From assembly GCA_964247055.1 (NCBI GenBank), contig OZ176055.1, positions 4,836,001-4,900,000 of the forward strand: DNA of 64,000 bases, read 5' to 3'. The notes beneath the pieces are model-generated. The model saw only the letters and a list, made by a program, of their open reading frames with translations, ran no database searches and was not told the origin of the DNA. Positions 1 to 61,473 of the stretch are shown here, piece by piece. The position numbers were made by a program, and so were the translations under genes. The DNA comes from Paragordius varius. Its lineage: Eukaryota > Animalia > Nematomorpha. Each line of letters opens with the position of its first letter. Position 1 is the first letter of the stretch.

Positions 1-2380
1 CATTATTGGCTCGTAGTGTGGATGTGATCAACTTCCTGGGGATACAATCAAAGGCCCTTTGTAAATCAATAAAAATATGATATAGTTTTTTATTTTTCGC
101 TAAATAGTTCTCTTGCAATCTTCTCAAAATGAAGATTGCATCAATTGTGCTACTGTTTGGTTTATAGGCATATTGTGATTCCTGTATACTAACGATTGAT
201 CTTAGTTTTGATTCAATAATGGATTCAAAAATTTTTAACGGGTGTTCCAACAACTTTAGTGGTCTGTAGGAGGAACAAACGAGTATGTCTCCTTTGTTTT
301 TATAAATGGGTTTGATGGTGCTTTTTGACCAATCATTAGGGATGCGATTCGTTGATAAGATTAGATTGAATATGTTAGTTAAATGTATAATGCATTGTGG
401 TAAAGCTTTGATCATGTCACAGCTGAGTTCAGATGGACCTGTAGCTTTGTTATTTTTCATCTTGGCCAAGGCATCTCTTACATCATGTTGTTATCAATGG
501 TCGAGGACCGATTGCTGGTTGTTGGTTTATTGTTTCAAAATCATGTTTTTGTGCAAATTGTTCTTTGTAATACGTTGTCCAGACATTGCTTATGTCACTC
601 CACTCATTTACTAGTTGTTGATCTTTATTTTTAATATAGGAAATTTGTTTAATGTCCTTTTTATTATTGTTAACTGAATTTATTGTTCGAAAAATCTTAA
701 GAATTTTCATGTCTTGTTCTAATTTTTTAGCTAAATCCAAAGCTTTTTTGTTGGCTGAAATATTGATGGCTTGTTGTAAATTTTTATTTGATTTAATATA
801 TGATTCCACGTCTCTTTTATCTTTTGTTTGTTTCCATCTTTTATAGTTATTGCGTTTAATTTTAATTAAAGGTTTTATGGATTCTGACCACCACAAATTT
901 GATTGTTGTTTTTTCCTGTATATTTTCTTTCTGCCACAACAATTAAGCACATTTGGGATGATGCTGTTTTTAAAATTATCCCAAGCTTGTTCAGATGTTT
1001 TGTGGTTGAGGCTAAGCGATGCATTAACAGTTTCTGAGAGTTGAAGTTTAAGATCAGGAAGGTATAGTTTTTCTAAGTTTATTTTAGGTTTCTGGTTACT
1101 ATGGTAATAGGATTTGTTTATTATTATTATTGCTACAATTAATTTATGTTGTGTGTTAGTAAGGTATGTTTTAGAGTCTTTATTGAATTTTCTATCTTGT
1201 ATGGGTGTTAAAATTTAGTCTACCATAGAATTTTGATTACCACTTGTATAAATTATTAATTTCTTTGCTGGTTTCGTGAATAGGGTATTGCAGATAGTAA
1301 GTCTAAGAGATGCGCAGTATTCTAATAATGTATCACCTTCTTTGTTACGGCTGCCAAAAGCGTTTCCTCCATGTATTCTCATATAGTCTTCACCATTAGT
1401 GCCAAAGTGGGAATTAAAATCTCCACCTATAAAAATTTTGTCATTTGGAGGTATTGCATGGGAAATGTCGTATAGTTGGTTCCAAAAGGCTTGTTTGGTT
1501 GCTTCGCTTAATCCAGACTGGGGAGCATAGATGGAAAGTATGTTAAAAATTTGTTTTTTAAAGCCGATACGTATTTGGATAATTCTTTCGTTGTGTCTGT
1601 TTACTTCTATTATATTATCACAATATTCATTTTTAATAGCTATAGCCACTCCATGTTGGCCTTTCATTTGACCTTTGTAGAAAATTGTATAGTTGTCTAT
1701 ATTCAGCTTTCCCTCAGATTTATATCTTGTTTCCTGCAGGCAACAGATGTCAATGTTTTTCTCTTTTATTTGGTCGATAACTAAGTTTGATCTACCGACT
1801 AGCGTCGAGATATTCCAAGTGCCGATCTTAAGTGGTTTTACCATATTGTTGGGGGTTTTTTGATGTTTGTGGTTTTTTAGGAGAGCATTATTATTGTTAT
1901 CATTTAAATTAATATTATTATCAAAATTAAGATTATCATATATATTAATATCATTAATAAAATTATTTGTAAGATTAATATTATCATTTTTAAAATATAT
2001 ATCATTGTTTAAAAGTGTTGTCAATTCATTCATTATTTTCATATAGGGTATGATTAAGGCGATTGTTTTACAATTTGCATGTCTTTGCAAATCAAGAGAC
2101 TATTTCGGTGTCTCTGACCTATGGAATTGCCTTTCTGGGCTTACGGAGTTCCATCCCCGCTTACATATATTACAAATTGGTTGTTTCTAGCAACTGGTTA
2201 TAGCGCCAGATAAACCCGCTTTATCATCTGTGCGAATGCAGGTATTGTGGTATTTTATAGGTATAATGGTAGTTTATTTTTTTCCACCACACCCCACACA
2301 GATGATTTCTTTCCTTTGCCGCTCCCGTTGGTATTAACCGGGGTGCACCACGCGGAGGTGGGAATCGGACTTTGCACCCC
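1..2380 (-). mobile_element. RTE-like non-LTR retrotransposon, 5' half (APE + start of RT), decayed
   Basis: APE motifs GTWNISTL, CCLQETR, GGDFNSH (1215-2042); RT N-terminal blocks at 1-480 (KATGPSELS, YRPLKLLEH, TIDAIFILR, FIDLQRAFD); HDV-like fold at the 5' end. Confidence 0.92.
2319..2380 (-). ncRNA. HDV-like self-cleaving ribozyme (copy 1)
   Basis: On the - strand: P1 GGGGTGC/GCACCCC, P2 CCG-A-TTCCC/GGGAG-CGG, P3 ACC/GGT, L3 TCCGCGT, GG for P1.1, tiny P4, J4/2 CCAAC. Confidence 0.85.
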
Positions 2381-2867
2381 TGATTTAGAGTTTATATTAA
2401 ATATTAAAAAAAGGTTAAAAATAAAATGAATAATGATATGAGATTTAATTAATAAATTGAAAAACAAAACAAAAAAGCTAAAGGACCAACTTGAAGTGGT
2501 TCGAGGACACTTTTGAAGTGCAAATGATATATTAAAAAAGCACTCACATCAGAGCATAAGTAGGTGAGTAAATGAGAACCCAAAACAATGCAGTATAAAA
2601 AATATCTTATATTTACATAAGTTGTGTTAAAAATACGGAAACGATATGGCCAAAATAGTAGACCTTATACCTATATTTTGAAAAAGAGACACAAAGTGAA
2701 TATTTTTAGTTGGCATTAATCATGCAATCAAAATTTGCTTTCATTTAAACATATTGGAGGCGGAAATAAGCATTTAAACAGTTTAATACAGAAAGAAACA
2801 GAATGTTTTGATTAATATCTAAGAAGGCGGAGTAAAACTGATATGAAAAGCGCGGTTTTTATAATAA

Positions 2868-5800
2868 TTGTTGTTGTTGTTGTTTAACATTAAGCGTTGA
2901 TGGTGCACCATAAGCTATCCAACTTTTTATGAAATAGTTCTTTATCAATACAATCTGTTTATAGCAGTTTGAGTTGTTGGAAATCCAGATCAATCTTTTT
3001 AGTCCAGGTTAAACGTGGGCGACCGGGCTTATTGTTCCCGGGTGGAATGATGTCAAATGAGGTCCTGATCGGATTGTCAGGGTTCATACGATCAAAGTGA
3101 CCGTAGTACCTCATTCTTTTGAATTGAATGAATTTGTCTATAGGCTCCATTTGTATATGATTGCGGATATCTTGGGGATTTAGTTGCGTTGATATCAGGC
3201 GTAGTATGCGATTTTCCGCGCTTATAAAACGTTTCTCTTGAGTTTGTGTCAATGCCATGGTTTCTGTGGCATATGTCAAAACTGGTCTTATGCCCATTTT
3301 ATAAATTAAGCCTTTTGTTTTAAGAGATATGTGCTTTTGAAGTGTGTATTTTAGCTGATGATATTTTCCCCAGGTACGATTTATTCATGCATTTATTGCG
3401 CTATTGTTTGATGAGTCTGATGTTATTTTGTCGCCAAGATAGGTAAACTCGGTTACCACTTCAAAGCTTGAGTTACTAAGGACTATGTGCTTAATTGATG
3501 GGGGCGGTGAATGCTGCACGCATGATTCGCATTTGAAATTTATCTGTTCGGATAGTTTGCCGATAATGTTTGTACATTTTTGGTGACACCATTTTTTACA
3601 TGCAGAATCAAATCCAACATTTAATCCGCAAACTCCGCATGGCTATTTAATTTCATTGTGGGGTTCACCCGTTATCAGGATTTTACTTTTATTTTCATTT
3701 ATTTTGAATCCGAATTTAATTAGCTGTTGTTGCCATTGTATAAACATTTTCTCTAAGTCTGAAATCGAGGTTGCGGTAAGAACTATGTCATCTGCATATA
3801 TACTTTCATATGGCAGATTTAACCGAATATCGCGAGTAACAGCGTCTAATATTGTAATAAACAGCAAGGGACTTAAGGCTGAACCTTGATGGAGTCCTAT
3901 TTTAATTTCATAGGAATCTGAATCTCCCATAGGGGTTCTAACAAATGTTTTAGAATCTTGATATAGAAGCATGATAGCTTGGATTAGTTGTTCATCCACG
4001 TTATTTACTTTTAAAGCCCATGGAATTAGTGATCTGGGAACTCTATCAAAAGCTTTCTCCAAATCAAGAAAAAGATGATATAGTTTTTTATTTTTTAAAA
4101 GATAGTTATCTTGTATACGTTTTAAGACGAATATGGCGTCTGTAGTTGAGTGGCTTGGACGGAAGGCAAATTGAGAAGATGATAATGTTACCTGGTTCCT
4201 TAATTTATTTTCTAATACAACTTCGAATATTTTTAAAGCATGTTCTAAAAGTTTAATCGATCTATAGGAAGAACATTCTAACTGACTGCCTTTATTTTTA
4301 TAAATGGGGATTGTAATGCTTTCTTCCCAATCCGGCGGTATGGTTTGGTATCGAATTATAAGATTAAAAAGATTAGTGAGGTATTGTAATCCGGTTTTTC
4401 CTGATTTTTTTATTATATCGGAAGATAATTGAATAGGTCCACTTGATTTATTATTTTTCATTTTTTTAAGCGCATTTTCCACATCAGCTAACGAAAATTC
4501 TAAAATCGAATGTTTATTGTTAATATTCATGGAAGAAATATGATATGGATTTGTTGTATTCAGAAGATCTTTGGTATAGTCTTCCCATATTTTTATAACC
4601 TCGGAATGATTTGTTTGAATATTACCATTTTTATCTTTAATATATTTCGTTTTGGGTATATCTTTTTTGTTTTCATTTGATAATTTCATTCGATTAAAGA
4701 TTTTGAAATTTTTTGCATCCTTCTCTAGCGACTCTGCAATTTTTATGCTGTTTTCGTGTTTGAGTTTGGTAATTGATTTTGCAACTTCGCTACGTAATTG
4801 TAAGTATTTTTTTTGATCTTCCTCTTTATGGGTTTTTTTCCACAATCGGAAGGCTCGGTTTCGTGATTTGATTTGGGGTTTAATTTCATCACTCCACCAC
4901 CAATTTGACTTCCTTTTCCTAGCGCCCTTTGTCATGCCATATATTGCCTTGGTGTTCTTGAGTAAGGAATTTTTAAAAAGATCCCAGGTTTGACCCACGT
5001 TGTTATCGGCTGAGCAACTTTCGTTTAAATCTATCAGCTTCCATAAACTTATCAGCATATATGGGTTTTTGAAGCATTTTAATGTTTGGTTTGGGTTTGT
5101 GGTGTCTTATTGGTATGGATTTGGAATTTGATCCTAATAGTAAGGTAGATACTACTAGCCTATGTTGGGTGTCAGTATTGTAACATTTTGTATCATTGCA
5201 TATTTTTCTTTTCTCCTTTGGAATCAGAATTTAATCAATTTGAGATTTTGCATTTCCTGAGGAATATGTATATAGCTTATGATCAGGTTTGGTAAAGTTT
5301 GTATTTAATATGCATAGGTTGAACATTGCACAGAAATCAAGGACGAATTCTCCTTCTTTGTTTAGCAGTCCGTATCCAAAACCACCATGGATACCAGCAT
5401 ATTCGATTCCTTGTTTGCCCACGTGTCCATTCATGTCACCGGCTATCATTATCAGGTCTTTATCATGAACTTTACGCATTATTTCAAAAAGTTGATCCCA
5501 GAATTTTTGTTTTAGACTGTCTGCGAGTCCTGGTTGTGGGGCAAATACACATATAATATTTATTATGGAGTTACTATGTACTAATCTAATTTGGATTATA
5601 CGGTCATTGTGTCTTAAAACATCGAGGATGTTGTCACAGTGCTTTTCATGTAAAAGAATTCCGACACCTCCTGTTGCCTTATTTCCTCCCTGATAAAAGC
5701 ATTTATAATCACCAGCGGTGAAGTTGCCGCTTCCAGAATACCTTGTTTCTTGTAAGCAACATACATCGACTTGTAATAGTTTAAGCTTTTCTACAATATC

Positions 5801-6319
5801 TATAGTTTTGTTTCTTAGAGATCCTACATTCCACGTCGCATATTTAAAAGTTTGCGTTTTAAAATCATTTTAGTTGTAGTTATCATTATTTTAAAAATGA
5901 GGCAAAGTTTTACAATTTTATGCCCTTAAAATAAACCTCTTAACTCCGAGGAGGGGTAAATGCAATCCTAGCATTTAATAGGGAATTTATTTGGCCTTCA
6001 AACCTTGGGAAATTGCCTTACGGGGCTAACGAAGTTTCCTCCCCGCATTCAGATATCGATAGTATAGTATATCATACGTTGTAAGTCCATCATTTTTGTG
6101 CGTTGTTTGTGAGGGCTCTGGTTATAGCGCCAGTTCCCGCTTTATCGATTGTGTGACTGCAGGCATTGTGGTATTTTATAGAGCATGAGAAGCCTTCTTT
6201 CCCATGCTCACCACGCCCCACACCACATCAGACCATACGCATGCCTTTCCATGTGCCGCTCTCGTTAGTTGGATATCCAGGGTGCACCACGTGGAGGTGA
6301 GAGTCGGACTTTACACCCC
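2868..6319 (-). mobile_element. Full-length RTE-like LINE (APE-RT-PHD), inactivated
   Basis: APE 5231-5850; RT ORF 3643-5058 (LHQGSALSPLLF, YADD); (AAC)n 3' tail at 2868-2883; TSD GGTTTTTATAATAA (2854-2867) / GGTTTTTATCACAA (6320-6333); in-frame stops and frameshifts. Confidence 0.95.
6256..6319 (-). ncRNA. HDV-like self-cleaving ribozyme (copy 2)
   Basis: P1 GGGGTGT/GCACCCT (G1-U wobble), P2 CCG-A-CTCTC/GAGAG-CGG, P3 ACC/GGT, L3 TCCACGT, GG, J4/2 CTAAC. G1 coincides with the element end. Confidence 0.9.
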
Positions 6320-6505
6320 GGTTTTTATCACAACTATGAGCTGAATGCAGACTCATTCGCTAAGGATAATATCGTTATAAACGAAAATTAGAAATTATTA
6401 CAATATCCAATACATACATTCTTGAACATTTTTATGAAACAGATATATCAAGCCCATTTAAGGTAAACTATAATATCACAAACAAAAATTCATCCAATAT
6501 ATAGG

Positions 6506-7058
6506 TTAAGGTATTTTTGATCTTTTATAACCATTAGGTATTAAATTTACAGTTATAACCATGCATTTTATTATCACTAAGTAAAATAATTTTGATAATA
6601 ATAATTTTTATTAAAAAAGCAAACCAAAAGCTTTTTCAAAGATTTTTTTTTAATTTTATAATAATGTAACGCCGATAATTATATTAAAATAATTTATATG
6701 ATTTTTAAATTAGTTTGTTTGTGAAAAATTTTGACTTATTTAAGGCCTGAAAATTTTGACCATCTAACCCAATTTACATCAGATTGTTTTTAAATCACTA
6801 ACTATTATTCGAAAGATACAGTTTTTCGCGCTATTTCGAGTGTTATATAATATATGGCTCTATAGCTAAAACTGTTAGTTTTAAAAATTTCGAGTTTAAT
6901 TATATATCGGGGCCAAAAAAATTCGATAAATCCTTATAAAAAGAAATTCTTAAGTGTTAGACCATTTTTTTCAGATATACTATTTATGTACTTTAATGAA
7001 ATAAATTATAAATTTATATGAATGGTAGTTTAAAAAAGTTAAAATTTGTTGTCTAGTG
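6506..7058 (+). repeat. Unclassified ~550-bp dispersed repeat, copy 1 (others at 22901-23429 and 46501-46995)
   Basis: Three co-oriented copies share long strings (e.g. cgaaagatacagtttttcgcgct, ttttttcagatatactatt). Two begin TTAA-GGTATT. Confidence 0.8.
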
Positions 7059-7319
7059 TAATATTTTTAGCAACAAATGCAATAGAGTGTAAAATAGAGT
7101 TGAAAGAAATACAGACATAATATCCCATTTTCCAAAAAAAGTTTTCACGGTCAATTGAAATTTTATACCAAACAATATAAACGTTTTTATAGTCAATAAA
7201 AACATTTTATTAACACTTATATATTAAATATGGTTTAAAAAATATTTTTGCCATATTTTAATATTTTAATGGATAAAAAAATTACAAAAAAGGATATAAT
7301 TTCGTTCAAAAGATAATAC

Positions 7320-7419
7320 CCCTATGAGTAAACAATTCCTTCAATATCTGTTCTCCGGAAGTAATTACAACTGATGATTCAGGACTCAGGCAAGACAATA
7401 AATCATTTATATATTGAAC
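7320..7419 (-). CDS. NAGS: NAGS exon 8 (VQYINDLLSCLSPESSVVITSGEQILKELFTHRG)
   Basis: 100 nt, tag| and |gtatta; ends in phase 1 within the Gly codon, as I recall for the human exon boundary. Confidence 0.85.
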
Positions 7420-10400
7420 CTATATGATATTTTATATAAAAAATATAAAATAATCAAAATATATTTTCTCAAAAAACCTTTGAAATATTTAATAATGTCT
7501 CGAAATATAACAATCTTCCGGTTAAAAATTAATTAAAGATAAAGTTATTGTAAATCATGATCATCATTAAAAAGGTGATTTGGCGTTAATCATTGAGAGT
7601 ACATTATAATTGAGATTTGACTATTTCTATATTCATAAGCGCTCTATTGCTAATGTTTGCGTAGTATAATATCTAACAGATCTGGAGGTTTCGTATAAAT
7701 TTCTTTATTGTTTGTCTTCTCGTCTTTCTACATGACCCCCTTTGTAATCGGAGAGTTCTACACATTGTTTATGGGTTTGAGATTAAGCATATGGTTTGGG
7801 TTAATACATTAGGTGTAGCTCAACTTGGATGGACGGAGAACAAAATTTTGTTGGATTCAGCGTATAAAGGTTTTGATTGACTTGTTTTTAACATCGGTCA
7901 GATTTCTGGCCAGTATCTAAGGATGGGACGGATAGCTGCTTTGTAAATGGCATTCTGTGTGTAACTTAAAAAATTAATTATTTATAATTATTTACAACGA
8001 GCGGTGTTTATTCGTTTGTGAATTTCGTTGCTTGATAGCGGGTTTCGCCCCCAGCTGATATCAAATCAGTTATGCAGCAGAGGTTTACTGTTTTTATATT
8101 AAAAGGTTCGAATAGGTTGAATGTAAAAACATTGAAATTATCTTCCATACATCCTGAGAATATGTCATTTTATCATAGCATTTAAAAGATTTAAGGTTAC
8201 CATTTTTTGGGTGGCCATAAAAAACAAAAACGCATGAATTTGATTTGACTATTTTACATATTCTGCGCAGATTATTAGAGTAAGCAGCCATTATTTTATT
8301 CTTGAAGATATTTACTTTACGCCCGTAATTTTGTATATGTCTTTTCATAGACCAATTCTTGATAGGATGTCAATTTCATTTGTCAAAGTTATCATAAATA
8401 TCGGCATAAATATCAGATATTCCGGTTATCGGATCTATTGTTAATTCTACTAAAATAATATTAAAAAGAGTAGGTCCTAATAAAAATCCTTGGTGGAGTC
8501 CATTTTTTCTTAAAAACTTTACATAATTCGTATGTTGTATTACTTGAGGTGTTTGATTGATTGCAGTTATGGCCATTCTAGAATACCCTGACTTAATTCA
8601 AGTGTGTTCTCTTGGGATCGAGTAAAAAGCGCGTCCCACACCAAGGAATGTATAGTATAAAGTGATATTTTAAATGTGTGCGTTAATATCTATCGTAATT
8701 TAAAGATAGCGTCATTCATACCAATAATTGAACCCGCATCGCATTTCGTTTAATCGTATTTAGAGTAATATTTTAGTGAGTATTACCTTTTCACATATTT
8801 TCATGCCATCATCATCATCATTTTTATATGGATTCGCCATAAAATGGTGGTTCACCCGTTATTTTTTTCTAATCTTTTCTTGATCTGACTAACTTTAGAA
8901 TTATAAAAGATGCGAGGTCTTTATTAATTTTATTATTCAGTTTAATTTAGGTTATAAAGCGTCTTCTTTTGTGTATATGGAGATAACATGGTTTCCTAGT
9001 CATTGGTATTTTTCCATCCCTTATTATAACATTATTAAAGCGTTTTGCGAGATATGTATTTGCATATTGGGTATCTATCGATTTGAACATGTCACCAGTT
9101 GTAATTATTCGTATTAAGTAAGGCGGTATTGATAAATGATTTTGTAATTTTCAGTGAAGCTTTGAAAAGTTGACGTAATAAAAATTTGAATTAAACTTAA
9201 CATTCGTGAGTTGACAAAAACCAGCTTTTAACTTCGGCTGGATCATTGGTTATTTTTACTGATTCTGGCGCAGTTGATATAATTTTAATTTTAGTTATCG
9301 TTCTTTCGCAATTTTCATAGCTTTTTGATATAATTTTAATGGTGTTTTTTTTTAAAACCTTATTTTAAATGTTTTTTCACGTGTTATTCCATCAGAATCG
9401 ATATTTTTGGATTAATTTTTTGTGTTTTTTTCCAACCTATTAAAAGGATCTATTAGTTTTTGCGCACTGCCTTCTTTTCTTTTTGTATAAATAACATGTT
9501 ATTGCTATTTTATGTATGATTTATAAATATAGATTTTTAATGATCTGGTTTAATCAATTTAATACATGTATTTTTTTCGAAAAATTTTAGGTTTTAAAAC
9601 ACGCATTACCGATAGTATTCCAAATTAAAACTTATATGCCTTAAAGGTTACCGAAATGCATCATTTTAATCAAAAAAAAATATTTAGTAAATGTTAACCG
9701 AAATTGGTGTAAAACAGTGGTGTATATTTAAATAGAAACTAGTATATAAATAATATAAATAAATTTACCATAGATATTGCATTCTTTTGATCAAAATATG
9801 AATGCATCATATCAAGATTTAATTGCGACTGTATATTTGCTAAATCTTCTGGCAAATGGACCAAAGGAACAATCTGTTATATGTCATTATATAAGATATG
9901 TCAGTTTTGGGTTAAAAATCTGTTTGAATATTTTTATATTTTTGGATAGTAAAACTTACCAGTTTGAGAATCCAATAAAAAGAGGAAGATTTTGCACATA
10001 AGGAAAATAAACCCGAAATCTGATTCAAAAGAATTTTGATTATAACTTTATGAAATTATATGCCTGTGTTTTAATAATTTTGGATATTTAAAAAGTAAAG
10101 CGTCTAAAACAACAGATTTTCGAAATAATTGACTATGGGGGGTTTTAAGATGCTTAATATTCGACAAAAATATAATTTTGCAGAAACGCTAGTTTTTATA
10201 CACTGGCTTTTCCTTTTGTATTAAAATAGGATAAATACCTCATAATGTTGTATCATAAATAAAATATTCAGAGGCGTACTAATAATATTAACAATATTTA
10301 TTTTTAAATGAGACTATAAAAAATAACTATGAAGGATGTATGAAATATTACTAATTTATAATTATTATAAAAAACTAATCTTTAACAAACCTTATTATAT

Positions 10401-13400
10401 ACTATTTTAACAATATTATTAAATACGATTTAAACAATATTACAAATATTTAAATTTAATATGAAAACAATTCATATTGCTTTTAATTGTCAGTTTTTCG
10501 CCAAGATCTATGCATATTATATGCACATTTTTTTCAAATACAAAAATTAGAAATAAAAATATTTTTTAAAGTAGAAAAGATGTTTTAAAAAAAATCCAAA
10601 AAATCCATTGATCCATCCTTTTTTTAGGTCCCAAGGTGTCTGGGTTACCATGCACCAACTTTCTGAACAATGTCCTATCAAATACTTGTTCAGGTTCAAT
10701 ATTGAAATGTAAGAGATCTTGAGTCAACTGTTTGGACCATGTGAGTTTAGGACGACCTTTTCTGTTTGGGCCGGGTATGTTTAAATGTGGTATTTTTTGT
10801 ACCCAGTTATCCAAATTCATACGTTGAATCCGTAATATCGCAATCGGTAGCGCTGAGTAAACAGAAATATGGGTTCTATTTCTTAGATGGTATTCTCAAA
10901 AATATTGTTGCAGATTTTTAGCATGTGATTTTCAGCTCTAATAAGCCATTTAAGTCTGTTGCTGTAAGGGCCCAGGTTTCTATAGCGTATTTCATAGCTA
11001 GATTTCTCCCATTTTTTTAAATTTTTAACTTATAATTCGATTGATATTTTTATTAGTTAAAATATATTTTGATTAATTGACTTAACCCATCATTGACTGA
11101 TTCTATGAGAAATGGCATCCCTCAAAGATCCATCAGATGCTATATAATCGCCAAGATATGAAAAAAATTTCTAGTTTTCATTGAAATTTAAAATACGAGG
11201 ATTAGCTATTGGCAGTGGTATCGATAAAATGGTTATTAATAATTTCCTTTTATAATGGAGCATTTTTTATGGACCAATTTTTGCATTTTGTGCAACAAAA
11301 TGAGTTTAGTTTTACTTCTGTGCAAAATGGTCATGAGAACTTGATGATGTTGTGCTCATCTGTGATTAGGATTTCAGTTTTCATTGTATTGATCTTAAGA
11401 CCGTGTTTTGGTAATTGATTCAACCACCTTATATATTACGAGTATTGAAATAATTTCCGCAGTAATAAAGATCGGCTGCATAGAGAATCATATGGCAATC
11501 CTTCTCTTAGTCTTTTGTGATGTAGTATAGTATGGATATAAAAAGAAGAGGGCTTAAAATACACCCCTGATGCAACCCGGTATTAATAATGATATATTCT
11601 GAATTTCTAGCAGGTGTAAGAACACATCTGATTGTGTTGGTGTAAATTAACATTCTTTAATTTATATACATCTACGTTGTTGTAGCACAGTGAATCTATT
11701 CTTAGTATTCTAGGTACTGAGTCGTAAGCCTTTTCAAGTCGACAAAGCGGTGGTATAGTTTAATATTTTTTGCTCGGTATTTATCTTGTAATTGTTAAGG
11801 AGGAATATTGGATTAATTGTGCTTTTTTCGCTGAGGCAAATTGATTGGATTAATTAAAATGAGCAGAGCTATAATTTTTCAAGCATGGTTGAAAAATATC
11901 AACCCATGCTTAAGAAGTTTAAGGGCCTGTATGAGGAACAGTTTAGTCCTTTATTTTTGAAGTGGGAAATATAATGCTTTTTTCCCAGTCTGTAGGTATT
12001 TTAATTTCAACTATTTTTTCCCAATCTGTGGGTATTTTAATTTCAACTATTATTTTGTCAAATAAATTTGTTAAAAGCATGGAAATATTGGGTATTAATT
12101 TTATGATATCAAAACATAGTTCACTAGGCGAAGCCTTGTTTGATTTTATTTGGTCTAAGGCAATTTCGATTTCTTGTATTGTGAATGTCCTTAATGGGCC
12201 ACAACAGGGATCTCTATCAGAATTTATGATGGGTATTAAAATGTTGTTGAGATTTTGTTCCATATATTTTTGCCATATGCTTTCGATTCTGGTTGTATTT
12301 GTAAATTAATATTATTATTATTATCTTTTATACATTGAATTATTGGTATATCTTTTTTGTTATTATTCTAATGTTTCATATATTTGAAAATTTTATAATC
12401 TTGGATTTTCTTTTTAAATTTATCAGCAGTTTTAGCCTTATCATTCATTAATCTTGATTCCTTTTCTACCTTTTTGTGTGTTTTTAATACTCAGCATTGT
12501 CGCATTCTCTTTTCGAATTTTTGCATTTTTTATACAAACGCGCTTTTTCTTTAAGTAATGGCTCAATTGCATCGTCCCACCACCATTTCCTTTGGAACTT
12601 ACTCTTTCTCTTACCACACCATTTCTTTCTGTTTCAATAGCATTGCTCCTTAAACTGTGCCAGGAGTTTTCAACGTTTAGATTCAATGTTTAAATCTCTG
12701 GTTTTTAGCTCTTATGTATAAATAGTCTTTGTTTAGTATTATTATTTAAAAGCCTTGAATTAAATTTGAAAGTTCATGTTAAAATATTATGATGTGAAGA
12801 ATTATAAAATGGTTAATTTACCAGATATTTTCGGTTATGTTGCCTTGTTAGGATGTAGTTTTTTATTGCCAGGAGTGTATGTTATCAATTTATTTTTGCT
12901 TTTATTAACAAAGTATCTACTAATTGTAGCCGCTGAGCTGTACAAAATTCTAGAACATTTTCCCCTTCTTTGTCCCAATTATCAAAGTTGTATCCTCCAT
13001 GTATACCAGAAAAGCCTCTGCTTCCAACATGTGCGTTTAGATCTCCTCCAATCATCGTACCGTCAGTTTCGGGATTTATGAAACATATTTGATAAAGGTC
13101 ATCTCAAAAATCCAGCTATTTATCGAACAAGCCTTTTTGGGGTGCATATACTAAAATTATATTGAGGATCGACTTGTTATATATCATTCGAGATTGAGTT
13201 AGCATATCGCTGCGTAATCTGATTAGGTTTTGTCGATGGGTCTCTTTCGTAATGGCGACCCCAGATTGTCATTTGCCACCTTGGTATAATGAATATCCAT
13301 CAAAGTTTTCATATCTGCATTTTTTATGGAGTTTATATGTTTAAACTTAAGATACGCACCGTATCTATCCATTGCTTATTTCATGTTCCAACATTCCAGG

Positions 13401-15027
13401 AGCCAATTTTAAAAGACTCCGATATAGTTGGAAGTTTTTTTTCGATTCTTGTATCCTTCATTTTTCATTGTGTTGTCCCGGTTTATTGTTTTTGAATTTT
13501 GATAATTTGTAAGTTTAGTAGCATTATCATAAATATATATGTTATCATTTTTATTAATATTATGATTTCGATTTGATATTAAGTTTTGTTAATCATTCGT
13601 GTTTATAAGTCGTTTATTCATGGTTATGCAATTGAGACAAGATTTTACCGATTATATGCCCTCATAAACCAACCCTTTCAACTCAGAGGTGAGAGTACAT
13701 TATTCGATGTACCATAGAGAATGTATAAAAAGACGACGATATTCTAAAATCGATCTCATCCGTTGGCCTTAGACAGTGTGTAAGTTTCCGGACATCACCA
13801 CGCGGAGGTGGACGTAGGATTAGATGTCTCTCCAAAAAAATAACCTATATTAAAATTGATTTATAAGTATATGGTGCAAAGATGCATTTTCAATGATAAG
13901 ATTTGAGAAAACGCAAATTTATCAAGTACCTTTACCTCACTTATAGTTATATTCATACGACCTAGTGTACGAAAACAAAATTTAGATTTTGGTTAACAAA
14001 AGAATTTAATTATTTTTTATTATTTTAACAATATCAATAGGTAGATATTTCCAGCAATTCCATATTTAGCACTTAAAATTTTTAAGCACCGTGTAATATA
14101 AGAATTATTGAGACATAAAAGTATATGTGCATTGGATAATTGATTTCACAAATCCTACCCTAATTATATACATTTAGATTAAATATAAATGTCGCGTTCT
14201 GATTAATATTTGTTGAAATGCTTAATTTTACCTTTTGAAAAGTGTCGCGCAATCCACCAGTATTGTTCAAAAATAATACCTTTAATGGTTTTAGATCTGA
14301 ACTCATTTTAAAAAGAAGCTGAAATGGATTCATTAACAACATTTTATTAGAATAATCAGCATTTATTCCTAATATTGGTATAATATTCATGCTAAAAATT
14401 GTATATAATATACCGAAAACACCATTTAATTTTTTCATAATTAGAGTACAAATTAGATCTGAAACTAAAAATATGTAATTACTCATTGGTTGCGATTAAT
14501 CTAGGTTTCACTCTATATAAACTTGAATCCAAAAAAGATCTACTTTGTAAGTTTTGAATATAAAATTCTTCTGCAAGTTTACGACTGTTGCATTCAAAAA
14601 TATTTTTATTCTATCATAAAATAAATTTTACAATAGCCAATGGTAAATTATAATTTCCATGAACTACTATTAGTTTCATGCCATTTCTTTGCAAAAAACA
14701 AAAACTAGATATTGAGTTTTTAAGCTATTATAATTTATAATGTAACTTGATATTTATCTTCGAAAATTTCGCTTGATAAATAGGCTATTGCAAAAGGTTT
14801 TTTCGTGTTTCCAAACCTTTGAAAATACCTCAACCAAAAACGCCCCTCTTTTGGGTCAGCTTCATACTTAAAATTGTATTATAGTAAACTTCCAATAAAA
14901 ATCGCTGTAAATCTGGAATGTAAGAATCATGATAATGGCGAAAACAGCACTTGTTATTATTATTAAAACGATAATAACGCATGGTATTCCATAGCCTACA
15001 TAAGACCAGTTGCTCCGATATATACAT
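7320..15027 (-). CDS. NAGS: N-acetylglutamate synthase, vertebrate-like, mitochondrial (5' part; NAT-domain exons lie left of the window)
   Basis: Hand-spliced exons: 15027-14890, 14866-14747, 14724-14632, 14610-14483, 14464-14414, 14391-14232, 9873-9769, 7419-7320. All introns are GT-AG and phases are consistent, giving 298 codons with no stop. The peptides match recalled human NAGS motifs: DLQRFLLE/DIQAFLNQ, KPFAIA/KPFAVI, FLQRNGMKLIVVHG/FLQRMDMKPLVVLG, WCFRMNIIPIL/WCLESGSIPIL, LKPLKVLFLNNTGGLRD/LRPTKIIFLNNTGGLRD, VHLPEDL/VNLPADL, DLLSCLSPESSVVIT..ELFTHRG/DVLSRLPHHSSAVIT..ELFSNKG. The Arg-rich N-terminus resembles a mitochondrial targeting peptide. Confidence 0.9.
7620..8580 (-). mobile_element. 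Decayed LINE RT/C-terminal fragment
   Basis: GLHQGFLLGPTLFNII...IYAD and IYKAAIRPIL motifs; similar to 27320-28230. Confidence 0.7.
8806..9470 (-). mobile_element. Internally deleted LINE fragment with (TGA)n tail
   Basis: catcatcatcatcat tail at ~8808; RT domain-0-like text (TGDMFKSID...DGKIP). Confidence 0.5.
9769..9873 (-). CDS. NAGS: NAGS exon 7 (IVPLVHLPEDL...AISM)
   Basis: 105 nt, cag| and |gtaaat, phase 0/0; matches VLSNVNLPADL. Confidence 0.85.
10605..13829 (-). mobile_element. Decayed RTE-like LINE in NAGS intron 6
   Basis: APE remnant (SWNVG, 13300-13400), RT remnants (11500-12260), PHD remnant (~11300), GPNRKGRPKLTW C-terminus, possible TSD tccaaaaaat at both ends. Same family as 40712-42990. 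Confidence 0.85.
13755..13829 (-). ncRNA. HDV-like ribozyme (copy 3)
   Basis: P1 AGACATC/GATGTCC (first pair mismatched), P2 GTCC/GGAT, P3 ACC/GGT, L3 TCCGCGT, GG, P4 CTTA..TAAG, J4/2 GCCAAC. Confidence 0.8.
14232..14391 (-). CDS. NAGS: NAGS exon 6 (MNIIPILG...LNNTGGLRDTFQK)
   Basis: Carries the strongest NAGS motif, FLNNTGGLRD; donor AAG|gtaaaa. Confidence 0.93.
14414..14464 (-). CDS. NAGS: NAGS exon 5 (...YEKIKWCF)
   Basis: 51 nt, phase 2/2; followed by a 22-nt intron. Confidence 0.8.
14483..14610 (-). CDS. NAGS: NAGS exon 4
   Basis: 128 nt open frame ending in phase 2; followed by an 18-nt (or 24-nt) intron. Confidence 0.8.
14632..14724 (-). CDS. NAGS: NAGS exon 3 (LKNSISSFCFLQRNGMKLIVVHG...)
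   Basis: 93 nt, phase 0/0; followed by a 21-nt intron. Confidence 0.88.
14747..14866 (-). CDS. NAGS: NAGS exon 2 (YEADPKEGRFWLRYF...KPFAIA...DKYQ)
   Basis: 120 nt, flanked by 23-nt and 22-nt GT-AG introns. Confidence 0.85.
14890..15027 (-). CDS. NAGS: NAGS exon 1 (MYISEQ...DLQRFLLE)
   Basis: ATG at 15027 with an in-frame TAA two codons upstream; phase-0 donor gtttac at 14889. Confidence 0.75.
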
Positions 15028-15348
15028 CTTTTAACACTTCATGACCTCTTCAATTTTTGTCCTAGTTGACATATTAGGGTAATGTGACCAGATAGGCTGT
15101 TTTTCACAGTACAGTACTGGATTTTCAGAAAAAATACTGCCACTGTACTGCGCCCACTTTTGTACTGCTTTTTGAAATTGAAAAAAATAATTATTTATGA
15201 ATATATATATTAATTACCTTTAATTTATTCAAAAAAATTATTTAAAATTTGATATAGTACCCTCTGTAAAAATCACCCCATAATTTTTTAGTTTTTGCGG
15301 TAAAAAAGTAAGATTGGCCTATTGGTTAATATTTTATTTTCTGCTCGA

Positions 15349-18775: not shown

Positions 18776-21026
18776 TAGGGTGACCAGATTTTTTGAAGGA
18801 TAAAGCGGGACAAATCTAGAAAGGGGGGGTACAACAAAAAAATTTTATAAAAAAAATTTATTGTAGTATTTTTTTATTTTTAACACAAATACATTATAAA
18901 TATAAAAAAAATAATTTATACCTTGGTATATTTTTATCTGAGTAAATGCGTTTTAGCAGATTGTCATCATTTTTTAAAATATTGTAGAAGTCTTCACAAG
19001 AATTTGTCAAATTATATTTGACAGATAAAATGGCCTTTAAAGTTTCAACATTTAAATTTGATTTTTCCGATGTCCACACCAGATTTACTGTGAAAAAACG
19101 CGCTCAGTAGCAGCGTGGTTCCAGGTAAAGATAGTGCAAATTTTACAATTTTAAAATATTATTGTATGGAACAGAGTTTGTTTCAAAATTATGAAATATT
19201 TCTAACCATTTCTTTTCTATTGTATTTTTTCTCTTGTCCATAATTTAAGTTTTTTCATTAATATATTTTTTAACTAATGATACTTCAGAAAAAGGATCAT
19301 TATTTGAAAGGTTACTTTTTGGGAATTTTTGGGAGATGCAGAGATCAAATGATTTCTAAACATCGCACCAATTAAATTCTGGTTTTGATTTATCCACTGA
19401 AAATGATCAATTTTATTAAATTGCACCGTCCAGTCCAAATAATCTTTACAGTTTGTATAAAACATTTTTATATGATCCAGGATATCTTGGCGATTTATTG
19501 GTATAAAATATTTTCTAAACTTTCTTGACATTGGAATTTTAGGTTACTAACTTCATTGGCTACTTCGATTGCCAAAGTTTTGTCGCCTTCTATCAATTTA
19601 ATTACATTTTGAAAGAGAGAAGCTTGATTATGTAGGAACTCTAACCATATTTTTGAAGAATCACTTTCAAAAAAATATCCAAAGTTGTAGGACATTTGTA
19701 CTGTGACAAAAAAATAGGATTTTAAATATTTTTTAAAAATTTTTCGATAGCTGGCATAAGAGCAAACCAACGAGTTTTACAATATCCAAGCATTTTTTGA
19801 TATTGAATTTCGCATTTTCACAGAATTCCTTAAGCATTTCAACGCTTACCGTGTATGTAAAAATAGGAATATATCTTAACAACTACATTTTCCACATCTA
19901 GGTGTACCAAATCAGCAGCTGTTTGAATAGCGTTGTGTATTAAATGCGTTGCATCCAACGTCAATAATGTTTTGATTAAGATTATCTGCTAATTTATTTA
20001 AATTATTTTTTGTTCACCTCCTTGCTTTTCCACCGAAGTTCGTATTGGTGTTTTCAGCGCAATATGCAATTTTGTCTTTTAAATTATTTTTTCTAGAACA
20101 TTCATTATTGAAGTAAAAATTATGTCGGAATTTGTACCGGGTAGAGAAATAAAATCTAAAATTTTAAATCTACTCCGGTTTCTGATCAAAATATCTTATT
20201 AAAGTAGGAAATATTTGCTTCCTGATTTGATACATCAGAGTATGTCGATATTAAATTAATTTTCAGCAAATTTTTTTGTATTTCAGAAAATGCATGTGGC
20301 GAAAGGACATTGCATACAATGGCTTCAGCCTTTGTACGGACACGAATAACCTGTGAGGTACAATCCATAGATCTAAAGGAAGTGATTAACGGCGTGAAAA
20401 GATAAAACGCCTTCGGCTAGAGACAAATTCTTTTCTTCCTCTCCAAAAGCGGTTTTTCGATAAAAATCGCTCATTTTGTAAGATGATGCCGCCATATCTA
20501 TTTTTATGTTTCTGTTTTTCTATATGCTTTTTAATATCATGCTTGCCGCCATGTGCTAGAGTGAACCCCTCGCATAAAGCATTTAACAAATAACTCATTC
20601 TTTGTTTTTTTGAGAAAAGGAAATTCTTTCATTAAATCATCGTTAAATTTACAACCTCTTTTTGTTCTCATATTTTTAAACTATTAGTGTATAAAAATAT
20701 TATATTACCTTAATTTTCTGGAGTAAACGTATAAGCTACCGATTTGTGGTATTAATTTTTTTTTTGATAATTTTAGCAGCAGGATTAGGAAAAGTGTATA
20801 ATCATATGATATAAATTCGAAAAAAAATATTTTTAATTTAAAAATAAAAAATTTTAATTAAAATTGATATAGATTTAAAGATAATATTGATGATAAAAAA
20901 TTTAAACGTATAAAAACAGTGTATTTAAAAAGATTTTTTTTATACAATCGTGAAAAAGCGGGACATTTTTAAAACGCAGCGGGACGCGGGACAAAGTGTG
21001 AAAAAGCGGGACGTCTGGTTAACCTA
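18776..21026 (-). mobile_element. hAT (Blackjack-like) DNA transposon with frameshifted transposase
   Basis: Termini TAGGGTGACCAG...CTGGTTAACCTA; subterminal GCGGGAC repeats; C-terminal dimerisation text (ERVFS..WTSEKSNLNVETLKAIL). No clean TSD. Confidence 0.85.

Positions 21027-26687: not shown

Positions 26688-61473
<34,786 letters not shown>

Follow-up and report, generated by a model that had tools for sequence, protein, structure and literature searches.

Can an animal spliceosome remove introns of 18 to 24 nt from a gene that elsewhere carries introns of several kilobases? This question is raised by the window, the whole stretch of 64,000 nucleotides of Paragordius varius DNA analysed here, in which a NAGS gene on the minus strand starts at 15027 and extends past window position 1. 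The sequence-only reading had proposed that its first part is hidden by five consecutive A/T-rich GT-AG introns of 23, 22, 21, 18 or 24, and 22 nt, and these segments are indeed all present on the minus strand. In the order of transcription, exon 1 (14890-15027, with an ATG at 15027, or 14982) is followed by intron 1 (14867-14889; 23 nt, phase 0), exon 2 (14747-14866; 120 nt), intron 2 (14725-14746; 22 nt, phase 0), exon 3 (14632-14724; 93 nt), intron 3 (14611-14631; 21 nt, phase 0), exon 4 (14483-14610; 128 nt), intron 4 (14465-14482; 18 nt, or 24 nt if it extends to 14459; phase 2), exon 5 (14414-14464; 51 nt, or 45 nt), intron 5 (14392-14413; 22 nt, phase 2) and exon 6 (14232-14391; 160 nt). 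All five segments start with GT and end with AG. Their A/T content is 79-86%, or 93% without the terminal dinucleotides, and that of the exons is 71%.

Retention of introns 1, 2 and 5 leads to a frameshift and to a stop within 19, 3 and 7 codons, respectively; introns 3 and 4, both of length 3n, contain in-frame stops, two in intron 3 and one at the start of intron 4. A stop or frameshift in every one of the five is also what has been described of short introns in ciliates, those of length 3n likewise holding in-frame stops (PMC5014332). Outside the GT..AG segments, the 895 coding nt of the gene are free of stops and frameshifts. A dynamic search found that a stop-free frame from the ATG at 15027 to 14232 requires a minimum of five removals of 18-30 nt. 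With up to eight removals allowed, no dinucleotide shuffle out of 1000 gave an open frame; with up to five, a single control frame out of the 1896 taken from the window did so, and that one was the NAGS locus itself. However, three or four longer removals (31-120 nt) can also open the frame mechanically, so that homology is needed to place the borders.

NAGS homology was searched exon by exon with a NAGS/K profile built from 85 bacterial proteins, whose loci were fetched. Exons 2, 3, 6 and 8 are collinear on this profile, at positions 26-52 (weak), 53-76 (E 3.8e-5, for 8 exons), 181-218 (E 2e-6) and 250-281 (E 5e-10), respectively. The match of exon 2 ends at about 52-54 and that of exon 3 starts at 53, the two adjoining across intron 2. 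NCBIfam PRK04531 matches exon 6 (173-217, E 0.003) and exon 8 (E 2.5e-5), within its AAK-type N-terminal domain, and PDB 3s6k is the only match common to these two exons. Homology is significant for exons 3, 6 and 8, whereas the assignment of exons 1, 2, 5 and 7 relies on published residue anchors; exon 4 has neither. No significant match to the 85-protein profile was obtained for exons 1, 4, 5 and 7, nor any Pfam match for single NAGS exons. The frame of exon 4 is open, but no significant homology was found for it.

The gene is also longer than initially delimited. Exon 6 is followed by intron 6 (9874-14231; 4358 nt, phase 0), which contains a decayed LINE, exon 7 (9769-9873; 105 nt), called by the anchors Val310, Leu312 and Pro313, intron 7 (7420-9768; 2349 nt, phase 0), exon 8 (7320-7419; 100 nt), which ends in phase 1, and intron 8 (1-7319; >7.3 kb), which holds two LINE copies and leaves the window. 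No exon for the C-terminal NAT domain (PF04768) was found in 1-7319, where the gene leaves the window; a NAT-like match at 6678 (E 1.1) is weak, sits in a repeat and was rejected. Upstream of exon 7, positions 9874-9990 contain short open frames and a stretch bounded by GT and AG (~9960-9921) whose donor is of textbook form; this is possibly a cryptic or decayed exon, in which NAGS homology was not seen.

The AAK-like domain of vertebrate-like NAGS and of bacterial NAGS-K (PRK04531; PDB 3s6k, 3s6g, 4k30) is collinear with the window gene, and the presence of ultra-short spliceosomal introns in an animal-type NAGS gene is strongly supported. The N-terminus of the predicted protein appears basic and acid-poor, in the manner of a mitochondrial presequence, and the protein is probably mitochondrial. 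Compared with vertebrate NAGS, the window gene has five extra introns in the part seen and lacks human intron 1; acetyl-CoA:glutamate N-acetyltransferase activity of its product is a prediction. Searches for an animal NAGS yielded none: exon 6 against 50% representatives returned two repeat proteins and no animal NAGS, a word search for animal NAGS yielded no candidate, a degenerate DNA scan of metagenomes for NAGS gave 31 matches, all unrelated, the bacterial NAGS profile search recovered only bacteria among its best 120 matches, and the Atlas provided only AA_kinase leads (<0.9).

Human residue and splice numbering was taken from published variant tables (PMC4992009; PMC10094985 supplement 4), according to which the human introns in the corresponding part follow c.426, c.701, c.915 and c.1096. 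Across intron 1, Ile106 (a Leu in exon 1 of the window), Ala115, Pro117, Arg121 and Trp123 align without gaps, the last four with human spacing in exon 2. The distance from Trp123 to Arg166 over intron 2 is 43 residues in human and 42 in the window, and Arg166, Met169 and Val173 are spaced in exon 3 as in human. Over intron 5, Trp248 and Pro256 lie eight residues apart in both proteins, and in the window only if intron 5 is removed as 22 nt. Exons 7 and 8 accommodate human Val310, Leu312, Pro313, Val350 and Glu360.

Homology thereby fixes the borders of introns 1, 2, 4 and 5 and rules out longer options for intron 3. A 20-nt alternative for intron 1 (14867-14848) would delete Ala115, Pro117 and a Glu invariant in alignment A1; the next option for intron 2 is longer and costs 13 residues; and a longer intron 5 would lose conserved residues. 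Frame restoration gives its weakest support to intron 3. Alternatives of 54 and 57 nt would delete an invariant His-Gly there, and a GC-AG intron of 27 nt is possible. Intron 3 amounts to seven codons, and the stretch from Val173 to Trp248 is seven residues shorter in the window protein than in human. An intronised exon was nevertheless not adopted, because homologues differ by more than this in the same region: from Val173 to the conserved Pro there are 100 residues in the bacterial protein, 83 in human and 76 in the window.

Human introns 2, 3 and 4 are common to the window gene in position and phase, intron 2 exactly so if the tiny intron 4 is 18 nt long. The introns after exon 6 (phase 0, Lys305/Val306) and exon 8 (phase 1, codon 366, c.1096/1097) coincide with human introns 3 and 4, and tiny intron 4 corresponds to human intron 2 (c.701/702), which lies in Ser234 and is likewise of phase 2. 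Since it has the phase and position of human intron 2, at least this tiny intron would most simply be of old origin and have become shorter where it stood. For introns 1, 2, 3 and 5 the human variant tables show no counterpart.

The length of intron 4 itself is finely balanced. It has exactly two frame-compatible acceptors, at 14465 (18 nt) and 14459 (24 nt). Use of the distal AG, the proximal one being too near the donor and skipped, would cost two residues; it would bring the intron closer to the other five tiny introns of the window (21-23 nt), and this acceptor ends in CAG after a run of T. Window acceptors, on the other hand, mostly end in TAG or AAG. With the 18-nt acceptor, the phase-2 intron sits 14 codons before the Trp of exon 5, exactly as Ser234 precedes Trp248 in human, and the first Phe of exon 5 falls on human Tyr235; with 24 nt the distance becomes 12. 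Exons 5 and 6 total 211 nt with the 18-nt intron and 205 nt with the 24-nt one, human exon 3 having 214 nt. The two acceptor hexamers are alike at 5 of 6 positions, as a 6-nt tandem duplication would give; this has been counted for the distal site, but the resemblance fits either length. Homology thus appears to favour 18 nt, and sister lengths and the CAG ending 24 nt, at even odds, and both acceptors may be in use.

The segments are not peculiar to one assembly. Contigs from a second study (X3) and from a second sample (X4) contain all five unchanged, and their sole exon difference from the window gene, at 14716, is synonymous; five DNA runs from the two studies contain 80-100% of the words sampled from the NAGS stretch. 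Since these contigs span all five segments unaltered, an assembly error is excluded. An assembly or sequencing artefact, or chance GT..AG pairing, for which the ~72% A/T of the window might offer an opening, has next to no probability, in view also of the negative shuffles and control frames. It is also very improbable that the gene is a pseudogene and that the segments, as insertions that disable it or as remnants of dead introns, are no longer removed. The NAGS stretch shares no words with five RNA-labelled runs, and runs X6 and X8, searched at 80% likeness, match only the repeat upstream of it and leave NAGS uncovered, no spliced NAGS transcript being seen in these runs; moreover, the start of this high-copy repeat and the first ATG of NAGS are about 3 nt apart, and the 3' half of the gene lies outside the view, beyond the window edge. 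A dead gene is, however, hard to reconcile with disruptions confined to GT..AG segments and absent from the exons, or with a single observed variant that is synonymous, and the death of NAGS could not account for a 21-nt intron in the neighbouring SRP54 gene.

The interspersed repeat just mentioned occupies 15030-15300 and raises contig depth by orders of magnitude; it may include the promoter or the 5' UTR of NAGS. Its end resembles the 18776 terminus of a decayed DNA-transposon-like element (18776-20970) located between NAGS and SRP54, in which transposase-like fragments were recognised by eye on the minus strand.

The splice signals raise a further alternative, which is compatible with real introns. 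The donors of the five tiny introns (GTTTAC, GTTACA, GTAAAA, GTAATT and GTATAT) match U1 poorly, the U1 and U2 helices cannot both fit into 18-23 nt, and the same cell has to splice kilobase introns as well. A modified spliceosome or dedicated short-intron factor, with altered U1/U2/U6 pairing or loss of a bridging protein, could therefore be envisaged. This appears unlikely, though by no means as remote as a dead gene: donors in the long introns of the window are just as weak, and myxozoans and Stentor, with introns of 15-27 nt, keep canonical U2/U2AF (PMC13644364). Neither of the U12-type signals looked for (ATCCTT after GT/AT, and a TCCTTAAC branch site) is present in any of the five introns, no shared branch-point motif is evident in the six tiny introns of the window, including that of SRP54, and no snRNA was found in the window (no tRNA and no Rfam match). 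Introns 1 (14867-14889) and 5 (14392-14413) align at 19 of 22 positions. This likeness exceeds that of shuffles (p ~0.006 uncorrected, one of 20 pairs) and may reflect a shared signal or a shared origin.

Taken together, the sequence, the frame logic, the collinear homology, the independent DNA and the three intron positions in common with human argue that the five segments are real spliceosomal introns, with a probability of about 0.9. Only marginally less probable is the more comprehensive explanation that they are genuine major-type GT-AG introns of an intact vertebrate-like NAGS gene, in an A/T-rich and transposon-rich animal, with intron shrinkage and two coexisting modes of splicing. The host appears to be of animal type, with the standard code, the three NAGS intron positions found in human and SRP54 exons that resemble those of nematodes at 52-80% identity.

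The essential SRP54 gene, head to head with NAGS on the plus strand (26721 to ~61478), is complete, with 12 coding exons that are 52-80% identical to nematode SRP54; in the SRP54 exon search the best relative showed at most 67% identity. Its intron 1 (26799-26819) is 21 nt long and contains an in-frame stop, and the two exons it separates abut at residues 26/27 of Heterorhabditis SRP54. Its later ten introns measure ~287-7340 nt. The CDS borders at 78, 255, 360, 485, 636 and 785 appear to coincide with those of human SRP54. Compared with other fragments of SRP54, the exon at 54524-54740 carries six additional residues as an insertion. An SRP54 locus of Parelaphostrongylus tenuis (L152:8029-12577) was left unused as a comparison, as it looked fragmented and degenerate, with no GT after its first exon.

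In both genes the tiny introns lie 5' of every long one. The five of NAGS are adjacent and are followed by introns of 4358, 2349 and >7300 nt, and over these two genes, the only ones considered, the window holds 6 tiny and 13 long introns. The tiny intron 5 of NAGS lies ~610 nt past the ATG, whereas the second intron of SRP54, at 276 nt past its ATG, measures 7.3 kb, so that the rule is intron rank rather than distance from the ATG, two genes being too few for a statistic. The sequence-only reading, which proposed a spliceosome adapted to ultra-short introns, overlooked that the genome is not one of short introns: NAGS has kilobase introns filled with LINE remnants, and tiny introns only at its start. 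RTE-like LINE copies, with endonuclease, reverse transcriptase and a C-terminal PHD-like finger, were observed at 1-2400, 2850-6330, 10600-13830, 35000-38070, 40700-43000 and 51000-53730, within introns of the two genes, those in NAGS, three in number, being sense-oriented. The GC content of the window is ~28%, and its long ORFs are fragments of LINE endonuclease and reverse transcriptase. In base composition and repeat load it is in line with the Gordionus genome as published (26.9% GC, 64% repeats). The literature searched contained no paper on the intron lengths of hairworms, and the Gordionus genome paper makes no mention of introns.

Introns of 18-24 nt are too short to hold the U1 and U2 helices simultaneously. 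It can be proposed that shrinkage of introns close to the start of a gene stops at a floor of around 21 nt and that, since these helices cannot be seated together, the standard major spliceosome recognises the tiny introns by intron definition, that is to say across the intron, in normal two-step splicing. The signals needed would amount to little beyond GT(A/T), an A-rich middle and (T/A)AG. Unspliced copies would be directed to nonsense-mediated decay by their stops and frameshifts, a fail-safe like that of ciliates (PMC5014332), and downstream introns would accumulate LINEs and be processed by exon definition. Two length classes would thus coexist within one transcript, the tiny ones ahead.

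The sequence-only reading had placed these lengths near those of Stentor and nucleomorphs and far below animal minima. Animal precedents had been missed. Among 51 animal genomes surveyed in 2026, introns <30 nt, the class to which all tiny NAGS introns belong by length (18/24, 21, 22, 22 and 23 nt), were found only in myxobolids and dicyemids, where they are linked to compaction in tiny parasites (PMC13644364). Median lengths are 27 nt in Henneguya salminicola and 22 nt in Thelohanellus kitauei and Myxobolus rasmusseni, and myxozoans splice introns of 20-27 nt with conserved U2 snRNA and U2AF and reduced splice signals (PMC13644364). The myxobolids share with the window GT-AG introns of 20-27 nt, reduced signals and short introns beside short ones; their positions are conserved with other animals, as is that of intron 4 in the window. 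However, their short introns set the genome-wide median of compact genomes, whereas those of the window come only first, the others being LINE-filled and 0.3-7 kb long. An intron of 18 nt would fall below the 20-27-nt classes analysed in PMC13644364, where a minimum is not stated. In dicyemids, whose introns have a median of 27 nt and are <30 nt in two thirds of cases, size and GT-AG borders resemble those of the window, and positions are conservative, as for intron 4 here (PMC6543705). Their splice signals are reduced (PMC6543705, PMC13644364), but these introns form the genome majority rather than a 5' minority beside kilobase introns.

A parallel in arrangement is offered by flukes. In Opisthorchis felineus intron lengths peak at 37 nt, 90 nt and 3 kb, and, as in the window, adjacent short introns form clusters at the 5' ends of genes although the genome is large; intron definition was proposed for them, and exon definition of long downstream introns was offered to explain the clusters (PMC6530080). 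The fluke microintrons are nevertheless ~37 nt long, against 18-24 nt here. The ciliates Paramecium (~25 nt; PMC5014332) and Stentor (15-16 nt, cited in PMC13644364) share the size, but are unicellular and have tiny introns throughout, unlike the window. Ultra-short animal introns are thus already known from myxobolids and dicyemids; what is new is the repeat-rich setting, the accompanying kilobase introns, the leading position of the tiny ones and an 18-nt candidate at an ancient position. A tentative reading, given somewhat less than even odds, is that introns as short as 18 nt are spliced in a third animal lineage, which is repeat-rich and has kilobase introns: intron 4 would be the human c.701/702 intron, shrunk to 18 nt and using its proximal AG, below the myxobolid and dicyemid classes analysed, and the spliceosome would change over from tiny introns to long ones within one transcript.

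Gene finders were noted to miss genes with microintrons in flukes (PMC6530080), and it is plausible that standard ones would miss genes with introns such as these. The usual minimum-intron annotation settings would fragment or drop 5' exons, and counts of gene loss for the lineage could be inflated. The NAGS locus is distinctive for its run of five tiny introns and for the 18/24-nt case at an ancient position. A gene with both length classes and a natural 18/24-nt acceptor pair offers a direct test of the minimum intron length of an animal spliceosome, and also of how it passes from intron definition to exon definition. Since the tiny introns sit beside LINE-filled introns of 2-7 kb within the same genes, their shrinkage would be confined to the beginnings of genes rather than result from a reduction of the genome.
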